Source of the DNA: Orbicella franksi
Taxonomy: Eukaryota
DNA: 64,000 nucleotides
Direction: 5' to 3'
NCBI GenBank assembly: GCA_964199315.1
Contig: OZ116707.1
Span: 4,650,001-4,714,000 of the forward strand
Each line of letters opens with the position of its first letter. The first letter of the stretch is position 1. The position numbers and the translations under genes are program-made. Under the pieces are notes generated by a model. It searched no databases and was not told the DNA's origin. It was given only the letters and a program-made list of their open reading frames with translations. Below, piece by piece: positions 50,242-54,100 of the stretch.

Positions 50242-50404
50242 GGGGTACAAGAGGGTGTTGATGCGCAACTTGTGGACAGGAAGTCCGTTAGGCTTTCTGG
50301 GCAGTTTGTAAGCCCCGGTCTGTCTAATCGCCTCTCACACCCAAAGCCAACTCCACCTCCTCGTGGTGCACCCTGGGTAGCCTGGCCTTGCGGCTAAGGT
50401 TAGC
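50242..50404 (+). ncRNA. HDV-like self-cleaving ribozyme (candidate 1)
   Basis: P1 GGGGUAC/GCACCCU (G.U first pair), structured J1/2, P3 ACC/GGU, L3 UCCUCGU, P1.1 CC/GG, J4/2 GCUAAG, P2 GCCAAC/GUUAGC; the core closely follows the HDV antigenomic ribozyme. Confidence 0.7.
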
Positions 50405-50532: not shown

Positions 50533-50637
50533 GTAGCCCCTTTAGTCTGGCCTCTCTCCTTCAGACCTGTACAGGTCTTTGGTTCATGAAGGCACACAAG
50601 CCTCTCAACCACGACAAGGTAGGACTACTGTGAGAGG
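50533..50637 (-). ncRNA. HDV-like self-cleaving ribozyme (candidate 2)
   Basis: P1 CCUCUCA/UGAGAGG, P2 GUAGUCCU/GGGGCUAC, P3 ACC/GGU, L3 UUGUCGU, long P4, J4/2 ACUAAA; the +1 C is atypical. Confidence 0.6.
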
Positions 50638-50715
50638 AAAAATGTAATGATGGTTTCCCAGTCCCCCCTTGCCGTATCAAACGGCAAGAGTACTACCCAG
50701 AGACTGAGCGTGTTT

Positions 50716-51153: not shown

Positions 51154-54100
51154 CTACTTCTTTTTTCTGAAGAGATTCTTCAATTTGTTGTAAATGCGTG
51201 CCCATCCTTCTTGTTCCATGAGGTCCTTCAGCCGACGATCATTATTGATGGTTTTTCGGATATCTGTCATCGCTGGCAGCTCGGAAAAGTCTCTGAAGGC
51301 TTCTTTGAGGAGTTTGGTGTCCTCAGGGTCCCACTCTGTCCGCTTGGGTCCTGTGGACCTGGAAGAGGGATCGTCAAAGTCATCCAGCCAGCTGGAGACT
51401 TTAGCCTCTTTAGGTACTTCAGACCCAGGCGGTGTTGACGTTGCACCTATCTTTGCAAGATAGTTAACATAATTTACAACTTGCTTGACCCTGTTTTTTG
51501 AAAATGAAAGAAAGTAGAGAGTGGGGATCTGTCGCAGTGTTTTCTGTACGTCGGTCATGGTGACTTTGTCACAAGCCTCGATCGTTTTGCCAAAGGCACT
51601 CCTTATTTGACCCTTTTGTTTTTTGGTGAGCATCTTATGTGTTGGAGATGGTGGCACTACTCCACTGACCATGGTTGATTGCTTTGATGATTTTGCGGAA
51701 GGTTGCGACTGGGTTTCAACGGATGGTGGTGCCGGTGGTCTTGTCGCCTTAGATGTAGATGGTGGTGGTGACGCTGGTGGGCTCTGTTTCTCGGGTGTAG
51801 TTGATCATTGTGATGCTGGTGGGCTCTGTTTCTTGGGTGTAGTTGATCGTTGTGACGCTGGTGGGCTCTGTTCCTTTGATGTAGATGGTGGTGGTGATGC
51901 TGGTGGGCTCTGTTTCTCGGGTGTAGTTGATCATTGTGATGCTGGTGGGCTCTGTTTCTTGGGTGTAGTTGATCGTTGTGACGCTGGTGGGCTCTGTTCC
52001 TTTGATGTAGATGGTGGTGGTGACGCTGGTGGGCTCTGTTTCTCGGGTGTAGTTGATCATTGTGATGCTGGTGGGCTCTGTTTCTTGGGTGTAGTTGATC
52101 GTTGTGACGCTGGTGGGCTCTGTTCCTTTGATGTAGATGGTGGTGGTGACGCTGGCGGGCTTTTTTCCTAAGATGCTGACACGGCAGCGTCGAACTTCGC
52201 CTTTTCTTTCACGTCCAATAGCCGTTGGATAATGTTAACGGCCTTGATGCCAGTATTCATCAAGTCCGGCCGTGCGTACCACTGCCTAGAGGTCTTCTCG
52301 CTATGGGCGAGGACACGCCACAGGATGGCCCGTTCTTCTGGGTTGCAGCGATCCAGCATCTGCGTGGTTATCATTTTTCTCATATCAACAAATGCGATAC
52401 GCGATCCAAGTTTTACGCCACATTTTTCTAAGAAGGCGGAAAGCCTTTTACCAATGGTGCCCTCGTGGAACACGATTCCGTCGGTTGTGATAAAGAGGGC
52501 ATCCTCATCAAGCTTGGCAAAGTCAGGGCGAATTCTGCGGACATAAATGTCCATGAATTTATATTGGTCTGGCAGCATTGGGCAGATTGCTGGTCCATCC
52601 TTTCCGCACTTGTGCTTTGCCACTAGCATGACTTTGCAACCATCTTGGACTTTACCTGAGGTGTACTCGTGCAAGGTGGCATTATTCAGCGGCCTGGGGC
52701 GAGTACCAGTGTCTAAGGAGAACTTTGTCAGCAAGAAATCCCTGACATTGACGAACTCTTTAGTACTAAGTTCCTTTCCACGACCCGCTTGAATTAGCAG
52801 CCTCTGGGCTTCGTTGTATGCGTCGCTGGACTTGATCTGAGAGAGCTCCTCCAGAGTGAGAAGTCCCTCGGTTTCATCTATCATGCGCTTGTTTTTCACA
52901 TGGTAGGTCTGGCTGTCCACGCACGAACGCCAGCCCTTGATGTCCTCCTGGAGGGTGTTGAACCTAGCCATCAAGTCAGGGTGGACAGCTGGGGCGCTCT
53001 TGTTAAACCGTTCGTGCGTGACGAAACCAAGAAACTTCTCATACGAAGTCAAATATGATATGATGGTACCAGGCTTCTTAGTGCCATTGGTCAAGTGGGG
53101 CTTGACCCAAAGCTTGCACACGGCATCACCTTGGTGATCAAGGAGGCAAAGGATGTCATCGCCCTTTGGATCGATGGTCTCGAGCAGTGATCGCATCTGG
53201 GATGCATGCTGGAGACGTATTGATCTTTTTGTCGCCAGCTGTTGGCCGCGAGAGAAACTCGTAGAAGAGTACAAGCCACCGATGGCGGGCCGTTGATGGA
53301 TGAGCTGATGTAAAGTACTGAGCTATGGTGACGTCGCAATCCTCGCCTTTCTTTAGAGGTTTTGCTGACGAATGATGTGATTGGTCATCCGATTCTGACT
53401 CGGAATCCACTGTACTGGCGGTGTCAGCTTCAGCTGTTGCAGAAGGGATGGCAGATGCAGCGGCAGAGGTGGAGGCAGATGCAGCGGCAGATGTAGCATC
53501 ATCGGGGATGGCAGAAGGTGTGGAAGAGGGAGGAACACGGGCAGCGGGAGCCAGGAGCGGTGATGAATGGTGTTTTGGGAGAACCTCAACGATTGCTGGA
53601 GGTGGTGGTACTAAGTGGTCCTCAAGCTCCGCCAACCCTGTGTACGGAGTGGCCATCTTGAGGTAGCGTATGTGCGCTTTAGAACTTCTGTCAAGCCCAT
53701 GCATAGAGGGATTCTCCAGGTGGCGTGCCATGTCTAGTACCAGTTGATTACACCCAGGCACTGGGCACCACTTCCTTTGTGGGCCTTTCACTGGCTGCTT
53801 ACCCTTTCTGGCCTGCCTCTTTCCTCGCTTAGCAGCACCAGCACGTACGATGGATAGCAGTTTGTCAACTGCCTCTTCCGCCAGATCACCTTTCTTGACG
53901 TGAACGAGAAGATGGCGCCGCAGGTCGTTCCTGTTGAAAGAACAGTTGGAGAGAGGGCACGCTTTCTTCTTATGATGCGATCTAGTAGTCTTGTGAGTCG
54001 ATGGTGATCCTGAAGGTGAGCTGACAGGAGAGGCAGTGTGCTTAGGCCTCTTTGAGGTGGGAAGCGAAGACGATGCTCGAGGTTTTTTGTTTGCAGTGTC

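Follow-up and report, generated by a model that had tools for sequence, protein, structure and literature searches.

A putative self-cleaving HDV-like ribozyme family in the 3' untranslated region of a coral tyrosine-recombinase element

Genes and element at the locus

The minus strand of the window (the whole 64-kb stretch of DNA that was analysed) carries a trio of open reading frames: a 211-aa ORF, upstream and first of the three; a 368-aa recombinase ORF (52168-53274), whose C-terminal half matches XerC-type tyrosine recombinases; and a 172-aa ORF (51154-51672), the last, whose 3' untranslated region (UTR) carries the putative ribozyme described here, 517 nt downstream of the ORF. On the plus strand, a Rap1-type Myb ORF converges on this trio. 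Searches of the three minus-strand ORFs against Pfam gave no match. The identification of the recombinase rests on the XerC match over the catalytic half, which at E = 1.7e-6 lies below the curated cut-off. The N-terminal half of the same ORF shows, over residues 108-201, a weak match to three solved proteins described as 'ankyrin repeat-containing' (E ~0.0016). A peptide block of about 42 aa occurs three times in the ORF translations of window positions 51623-52171, on both strands; this suggests that the interval from the recombinase ORF to the 172-aa ORF holds a tandem repeat of about 126 nt.

The order 211-aa ORF, recombinase, 172-aa ORF, a spacer of 230-760 nt and then the ribozyme was found at about 15 loci. 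Across these syntenic loci the 172-aa protein is down to 29-47% identity and the recombinase ranges from 35 to 74%, and no reverse transcriptase or retrotransposon sequence adjoins the ribozyme. Judged by its genes, the mobile element is of the tyrosine-recombinase, Crypton-like type.

Two facing HDV-like folds

Read on the minus strand from 50637 to 50533, the locus contains all the helices of an HDV-like ribozyme in the nested double-pseudoknot order: P1, P2, P3, L3, P3', P1', P1.1, P4, J4/2 and P2'. Direct reading recovered every one of these elements at the place and in the order given by a first-pass annotation, itself made from the sequence. The 5' strand of P1 (CCUCUCA, 50631-50637) makes seven Watson-Crick pairs out of seven with UGAGAGG (50601-50607), a strand that is invariant among the copies described below though the search pattern left it free. 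P1' follows P3' directly, with no spacer, and the cut is predicted at the 5' end of this helix of about 7 bp, between U50638 (-1) and C50637 (+1), just 3' of a U5 tract (50638-50642). J1/2 is CA (50629-50630), invariant across copies. P2 joins GUAGUCCU (50621-50628) to GGGGCUAC (50533-50540) in eight pairs, two of them G.U, and conservation stops with this 3' strand. The three pairs of P3, between ACC (50618-50620) and GGU (50608-50610), close a 7-nt L3, UUGUCGU (50611-50617), in which U50617 and G50612 occupy positions 1 and 6, the sites of the reverse-wobble pair. The P3/L3/P3' stretch was fixed by the pattern of our metagenome scan; it is present also in L002 and L003, two copies found through the protein.

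G50615, at position 3 of L3, can pair with C50600, the base after P1', which gives P1.1 a reversed polarity; this swap had been noticed at first pass and was read directly here. The following base, U50599, lies opposite L3 U50616, leaving a U.U at the second P1.1 position. P4 (50546-50598) is a stem with interruptions, capped by a palindromic hairpin (50563-50578). It had been drawn as branched; when 18 variants were folded, all gave a single interrupted stem in the order GCCUU/GAGGC, CC/GG and terminal hairpin, with the 3' strand ending beside CUAAA. That motif is J4/2 (50541-50545), directly after the P4 3' strand; this stretch too was fixed by the scan pattern and is present also in L001-L003. 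We propose C50545 of J4/2 as candidate catalytic cytosine, with C50550 of CAGA as the alternative. Upstream, a hairpin (CUUGCCG/CGGCAAG, 50668-50688, minus strand) was confirmed 30 nt before the predicted cut, in some subfamilies only, with 7 bp where 8 had been announced.

A paralogous HDV-like ribozyme was identified on the plus strand at 50252-50404, with P1 AGGGUGU at 50252-50258 and its core at 50355-50376. The two putative ribozymes face each other about 115 nt apart, at the 3' ends of convergent genes. Their 3' regions are mirror-image paralogs, including a 51-nt inverted repeat with 86% complementarity; each ends in an HDV-like fold, and the only matches to ACCTNNTCGTGGT in the window are the two core motifs. 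The paralog keeps the ACC / U..UCGU / GGU frame. Its P1 is entirely different yet fully paired (AGGGUGU with GCACCCU), its P1.1 is a canonical C:G, and it scores only 13.4 bits against the drz-agam-1 model of Rfam. Within its long J1/2, at 50332-50340 (plus strand), lies the sequence CCUCUCACA, which repeats exactly the P1 and J1/2 of the minus-strand ribozyme. This relic looks like an orphaned former P1, and would fit the published model in which a changed P1' shifts the cleavage site (PMC3774820). Two contigs contain near-identical copies of both ribozymes and of the Rap1-Myb gene (L015:2817-3764 and L025:4329-5276); in them the upstream recombinase is 28% identical to that of the window and the 172-aa ORF was not detected, which suggests module exchange between different recombinase elements.

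Rfam models (HDV, CPEB3 and drz), which are narrow and do not score pseudoknots, gave nothing for the minus-strand stretch at gathering score, nor at E <= 10 in a 600-nt search. The single-sequence fold energy (z = -0.55) is uninformative, pseudoknots being invisible to the method. The energies are -26.1 kcal/mol for P1, P3 and P4 together, -10.4 for the P2 duplex and -33.1 for the best nested fold, so the double pseudoknot is only about level with that fold. This and the lack of an Rfam match count against the ribozyme reading.

The specificity of the pattern was examined with two descriptors. The first, made of helices only, matched thousands of places and was dropped as far too permissive. 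The strict one demanded Watson-Crick pairing in P3 and, in either polarity, in P1.1; U as the first base of L3 and CG as its fifth and sixth; seven pairs in P1, with P1' adjoining P3'; six pairs or more in P2; and a J4/2 of the C-N-R-A type. Over both strands of the 64-kb window it returned a single match, 50637 to 50533, for an expectation of 0.02 per simulated window. A chance match to a permissive fold pattern would agree with the thousands of helix-only matches, and 0.02 per window makes many over a whole scan; across many scanned windows this expectation is by itself not decisive. The comparative data are: 22 distinct conserved copies, fixed synteny and boundary-sharp conservation effectively refute a chance origin.

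Conservation and pairing among 22 copies

A word search with the 172-aa protein identified 23 relatives. The RNA unit was found downstream of the 172-aa gene in L001, L002 and L003, for protein identities of 94, 45 and 43%; in L003 the flanks are unalignable and identity runs from about 2 bases before P1 to the last P2' base. A gapped DNA pattern in which P1, P1', P2 and P4 were left free gave 22 further metagenome contigs. The resulting alignment (A3) of the unit of about 105 nt holds 22 distinct sequences in all, drawn from coral contigs, both genomic and metagenomic. In L010-L031 the search pattern fixed 13 nt in each core block; L002 and L003, which were found through the protein, agree with the other loci. 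Three loci (L008, L009 and L033) were left out because their contigs end too close to the gene. Related elements L004-L007, of which L004-L006 form a subfamily, contain no such ribozyme by pattern or descriptor. L004-L006 have another conserved 3'-UTR motif (GCCTCTCTGAGGATGAAGG...), about 120-250 nt after their homolog of the 172-aa ORF. In a further locus (L032:2290-2330) the 3' UTR has the 51-nt motif and an L003-type upstream block; about 20 nt short of the point at which a ribozyme would begin, it gives way to unrelated sequence.

Conservation of the unit is sharply bounded. Among nine subfamily representatives, identity is 0.94 in the 5' core and 0.92 in the 3' core, while the 100-nt flanks and distal P4 are at about 0.6, near the level of unrelated sequence. 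Between subfamilies the core is 92-94% identical and the 172-aa protein only 29-47%, and homology opens about 2 nt before the predicted cut and closes at the last P2 base. The 5' strand of P1 is identical in 20 of the 22 copies; of the other two, one has an A->G that still allows a G.U pair, and the other a U->C that costs a pair. A U stands at -1 in 21 of 22, the favoured base, with the fastest cleavage, in HDV (PMC1874588). The window copy is the family consensus at every core position.

The proposed structure leaves 95.6% of cells paired across the 22 copies, against 30-54% when the partners are slid. The fifth P2 pair is U-A (10 copies), C-G (6) or U.G (6), never C-A. The distal P4 pair at columns 66-93 is C-G in 14 sequences and G-C in 4, and P4 insertions of 15-18 nt fold as stem extensions, distal P4 varying in both length and sequence between subfamilies. 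These compensating changes and folding insertions directly support the long-range pairing of P2 and the P4 stem. The pairings of P1, P3 and P1.1 show no covariation in the 22 copies, so that the pseudoknot rests on conservation rather than covariation, with the paralog comparison as a further argument for P1 and P1.1. In particular, the covarying P1.1 of the first-pass annotation holds in the comparison with the plus-strand paralog and with canonical HDV ribozymes; within the family P1.1 is uniformly G:C (G50615:C50600, 22 of 22). With its sharp ends, its compensating changes in P2 and P4, and U-1, the U and G of L3 and the C of J4/2 all in place, the double-pseudoknot reading is supported by the comparative data.

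The same alignment admits another fold. RNAalifold, which does not consider pseudoknots, gives a nested consensus made of P2 together with GUC/GAC, GGUU/GGCC and a hairpin GAGGC/GCCUU, on invariant bases and compatible with all 22 copies. Two single G->A changes (L012 and L023) convert U.G into U-A in this nested fold and break pairs at the base of P4 in the HDV model. These observations, together with the lack of an Rfam match, the unremarkable fold energy and a position directly before a poly(A) signal, would suit a conserved structured 3'-UTR element with no self-cutting, which would bind a protein or enhance the poly(A) site, its HDV-like drawing being coincidental. We regard this as unlikely. 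The invariance of most bases of the nested fold is uninformative since they are pattern-fixed; the fold leaves the P1 heptamer CCUCUCA unpaired, although heptamer and U-1 are conserved and intersubfamily homology starts exactly there; the paralog on the other strand forms the HDV-like fold and is unable to form the nested one; and a strict descriptor match is expected only rarely, as given above. The nested fold may be a competing or regulatory conformer of the ribozyme.

A C at +1, paired with G (C1:G37), is present in all 22 copies, which answers positively the question whether homologs share it. The G.U wobble at the predicted cleavage site is absent from the 22 copies; among HDV-like ribozymes it is not universal, since those of the L1Tc/ingi clade have C1 (PMC4035085). 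Found with the reversed P1.1 throughout the alignment, the +1 C is, like it, a family trait and not damage. The suspicion that a +1 C in a C:G pair makes the ribozyme slow, dead or the representative of a new class has found little support, as active ribozymes of the L1Tc/ingi clade share these traits. In that clade, primer extension maps in-vitro cleavage 5' of C1 (PMC4035085). L1TcRz has one P1.1 pair, made with C+38, a base that can be captured by a G at -1 (PMC3185411). According to the authors of PMC4035085, the original search descriptor was too restrictive. Fast, crystallised HDV-like ribozymes have a P1.1 of U:A plus C:U or of U:A plus U:U; the U.U at the second P1.1 position of the coral fold has its counterpart in the solved Ackermannviridae ribozyme (PMC13635239). 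Since +1 C and a reversed single P1.1 have precedents in L1Tc/ingi ribozymes with in-vitro activity, the coral fold does not call for a new class, and by its sequence features the coral ribozyme belongs to the HDV-like kind.

Some copies are probably dead. The L3 G at 50612, conserved and located in a CpG, is changed to A in L001 (L001:4985) and L020, and also in a contig from the RNA library of run X1; all three have probably been inactivated by CpG decay. The same change abolished cleavage in a Nasonia R2 ribozyme (PMC3774820), and the importance of the L3 G has been stated (PMC3774820, PMC13635239). Likewise a G->C change in P2 (L015 and L025) and the U->C change in P1 (L018) make probable knock-outs. 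Such losses, added to the L004-L006 subfamily without the ribozyme, are what one would see if this true ribozyme family, or at least the window copy, were the decaying remnant of a retrotransposon 5' end that had been captured, with no role left for the recombinase element. This is quite improbable: the window copy follows the consensus at every core position, no retrotransposon sequence adjoins the unit, and a relic would not show such retention of the core beside proteins that have diverged so far.

Taken together, the stretch from 50637 to 50533 is probably a self-cleaving HDV-like ribozyme, member of a conserved family in the 3' UTR of the main transcription unit of the coral tyrosine-recombinase element.

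Poly(A) signals, proposed function and known systems

An AATAAA was found 4-30 nt after the last ribozyme base at 14 of 26 loci, in at least 5 groups with unrelated flanks, for a background of 0.025 per 40-nt window. Given this frequency, the usual layout is: stop codon, 3' UTR, ribozyme, poly(A) signal. The window departs from it, with no AATAAA or ATTAAA between the stop codon and 50400. Seven loci (L014, L017, L019 and L026-L029) present, after the ribozyme, the AATAAA, a near-palindrome (gttgtcaac) and a T-rich stretch with TTTATT; this has the look of a poly(A) region that serves convergent units in both directions, TTTATT being AATAAA on the other strand. Upstream of the ribozyme there are clusters of UGUA(A/U)AUA motifs, which fit a 3' UTR built for post-transcriptional control. 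A deltavirus-derived origin of the two facing ribozymes was considered and rejected because most subfamilies have the minus-type ribozyme alone and because it precedes the poly(A) signal. In HDV the order of poly(A) signal and ribozyme is reversed relative to the coral elements.

Parts of the region are contained in 14 RNA runs from 12 studies; in two raw poly(A) RNA-seq runs no read fell within the stretch. One contig from an RNA library runs across the predicted cut site, a point against cleavage; contigs do not reveal RNA ends. In run X3 a contig seems to break at 50637, which was discarded as a cut: it belongs to another subfamily, and its homology starts at P1.

We propose the following mechanism. 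After transcription, P1 would pair with the 7 nt after P3', and G50615:C50600 would close the second pseudoknot; C50545 in J4/2 would act as general acid, and the cut would fall between U50638 and C50637. The coding RNA would then end in the U tract with a cyclic phosphate, separated from the downstream part. For most subfamilies, cleavage would detach the coding RNA from AAUAAA and tail; as these lie downstream of the cut, a tail-less message and damped expression would follow. For the subfamily of the window the ribozyme itself would form the 3' end after the U5 tract and insulate the two units, a role suggested by the missing AAUAAA and by the nature of the downstream sequence, whose read-through transcript would be antisense to the Rap1-Myb gene.

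A wider reading can be offered only tentatively, and we hold it to be somewhat unlikely in its full form: ribozyme and poly(A) signal would make up a module by which a DNA transposon governs its own recombinase message. One product of the cut would be a coding RNA with a cap and no tail, the other a small polyadenylated RNA that lacks a cap and starts with the ribozyme. The subfamily of the window would have undergone a mirror-image duplication with loss of the poly(A) signals, which would leave 3'-end formation in the two convergent genes, and the stopping of antisense read-through, to the facing ribozymes alone.

Among known systems, the closest in features are the L1Tc/ingi ribozymes of trypanosomatids (L1TcRz and the SIDER2 ribozymes): they too form a double pseudoknot with a +1 C paired to G and have only one P1.1 pair, made with the C after P1', and they cleave in vitro 5' of C1 (PMC3185411, PMC4035085). 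The likeness drawn here is one of features. The L1Tc/ingi ribozymes, from protists, make up the 5' ends of non-LTR retrotransposons or of their degenerate derivatives, whereas the coral ribozyme is an internal 3'-UTR part of a recombinase element; the Pr77 trait, a place in the first ~77 nt of a non-LTR retrotransposon, does not apply to a ribozyme that comes 230-760 nt after the 172-aa ORF. SIDER2 copies are found in 3' UTRs and are linked to mRNA down-regulation (PMC4035085), and cleavage by the retroposon-borne ribozymes of Leishmania 3' UTRs is reported there to detach the coding RNA from its tail.

With drz-agam-1, R2 and RTE ribozymes the coral fold shares P3 ACC/GGU, an L3 of the form U..UCGU, a J4/2 with CUAA, a 7-bp P1 after P3' and a variable P4 (PMC3774820). 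It differs from them in L3 (UG instead of CC), after P1' (CU instead of GG), by a +1 C that is not a purine, by a location that is not the 5' end of an element and by the absence of an Rfam score. The CPEB3 ribozyme also has an L3 that starts with UU and a weak one-pair P1.1 beside a U.U. In contrast with the coral family, CPEB3 is intronic, mammalian and single-copy; its P1.1 is C:G, its cut site has a G.U, and its model (RF00622) gave no match on the minus-strand stretch. For the location, the nearest parallel is in the rodent CLEC2 3' UTR hammerheads, self-cleaving RNAs between stop codon and poly(A) signal which lower expression; they are of another ribozyme class and belong to a host gene rather than a mobile element. 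Our search of the accessible literature found no paper linking HDV-like ribozymes to Crypton/tyrosine-recombinase elements or to coral genes, nor any description of the present setting, the 3' UTR of a tyrosine-recombinase element beside a poly(A) signal.

HDV-like ribozymes are known mainly from the 5' ends of retrotransposons, from deltaviruses and from a few host introns. If the reading proposed here is true, the coral family would represent a new use for them, the control or formation of a message 3' end in a mobile element, in the 3' UTR of a recombinase-type DNA element. The family also gives an animal example of the stable maintenance of a +1 C together with a reversed P1.1 pair; such copies would escape descriptor searches in which +1 has to be G and P1.1 has to be C:G.
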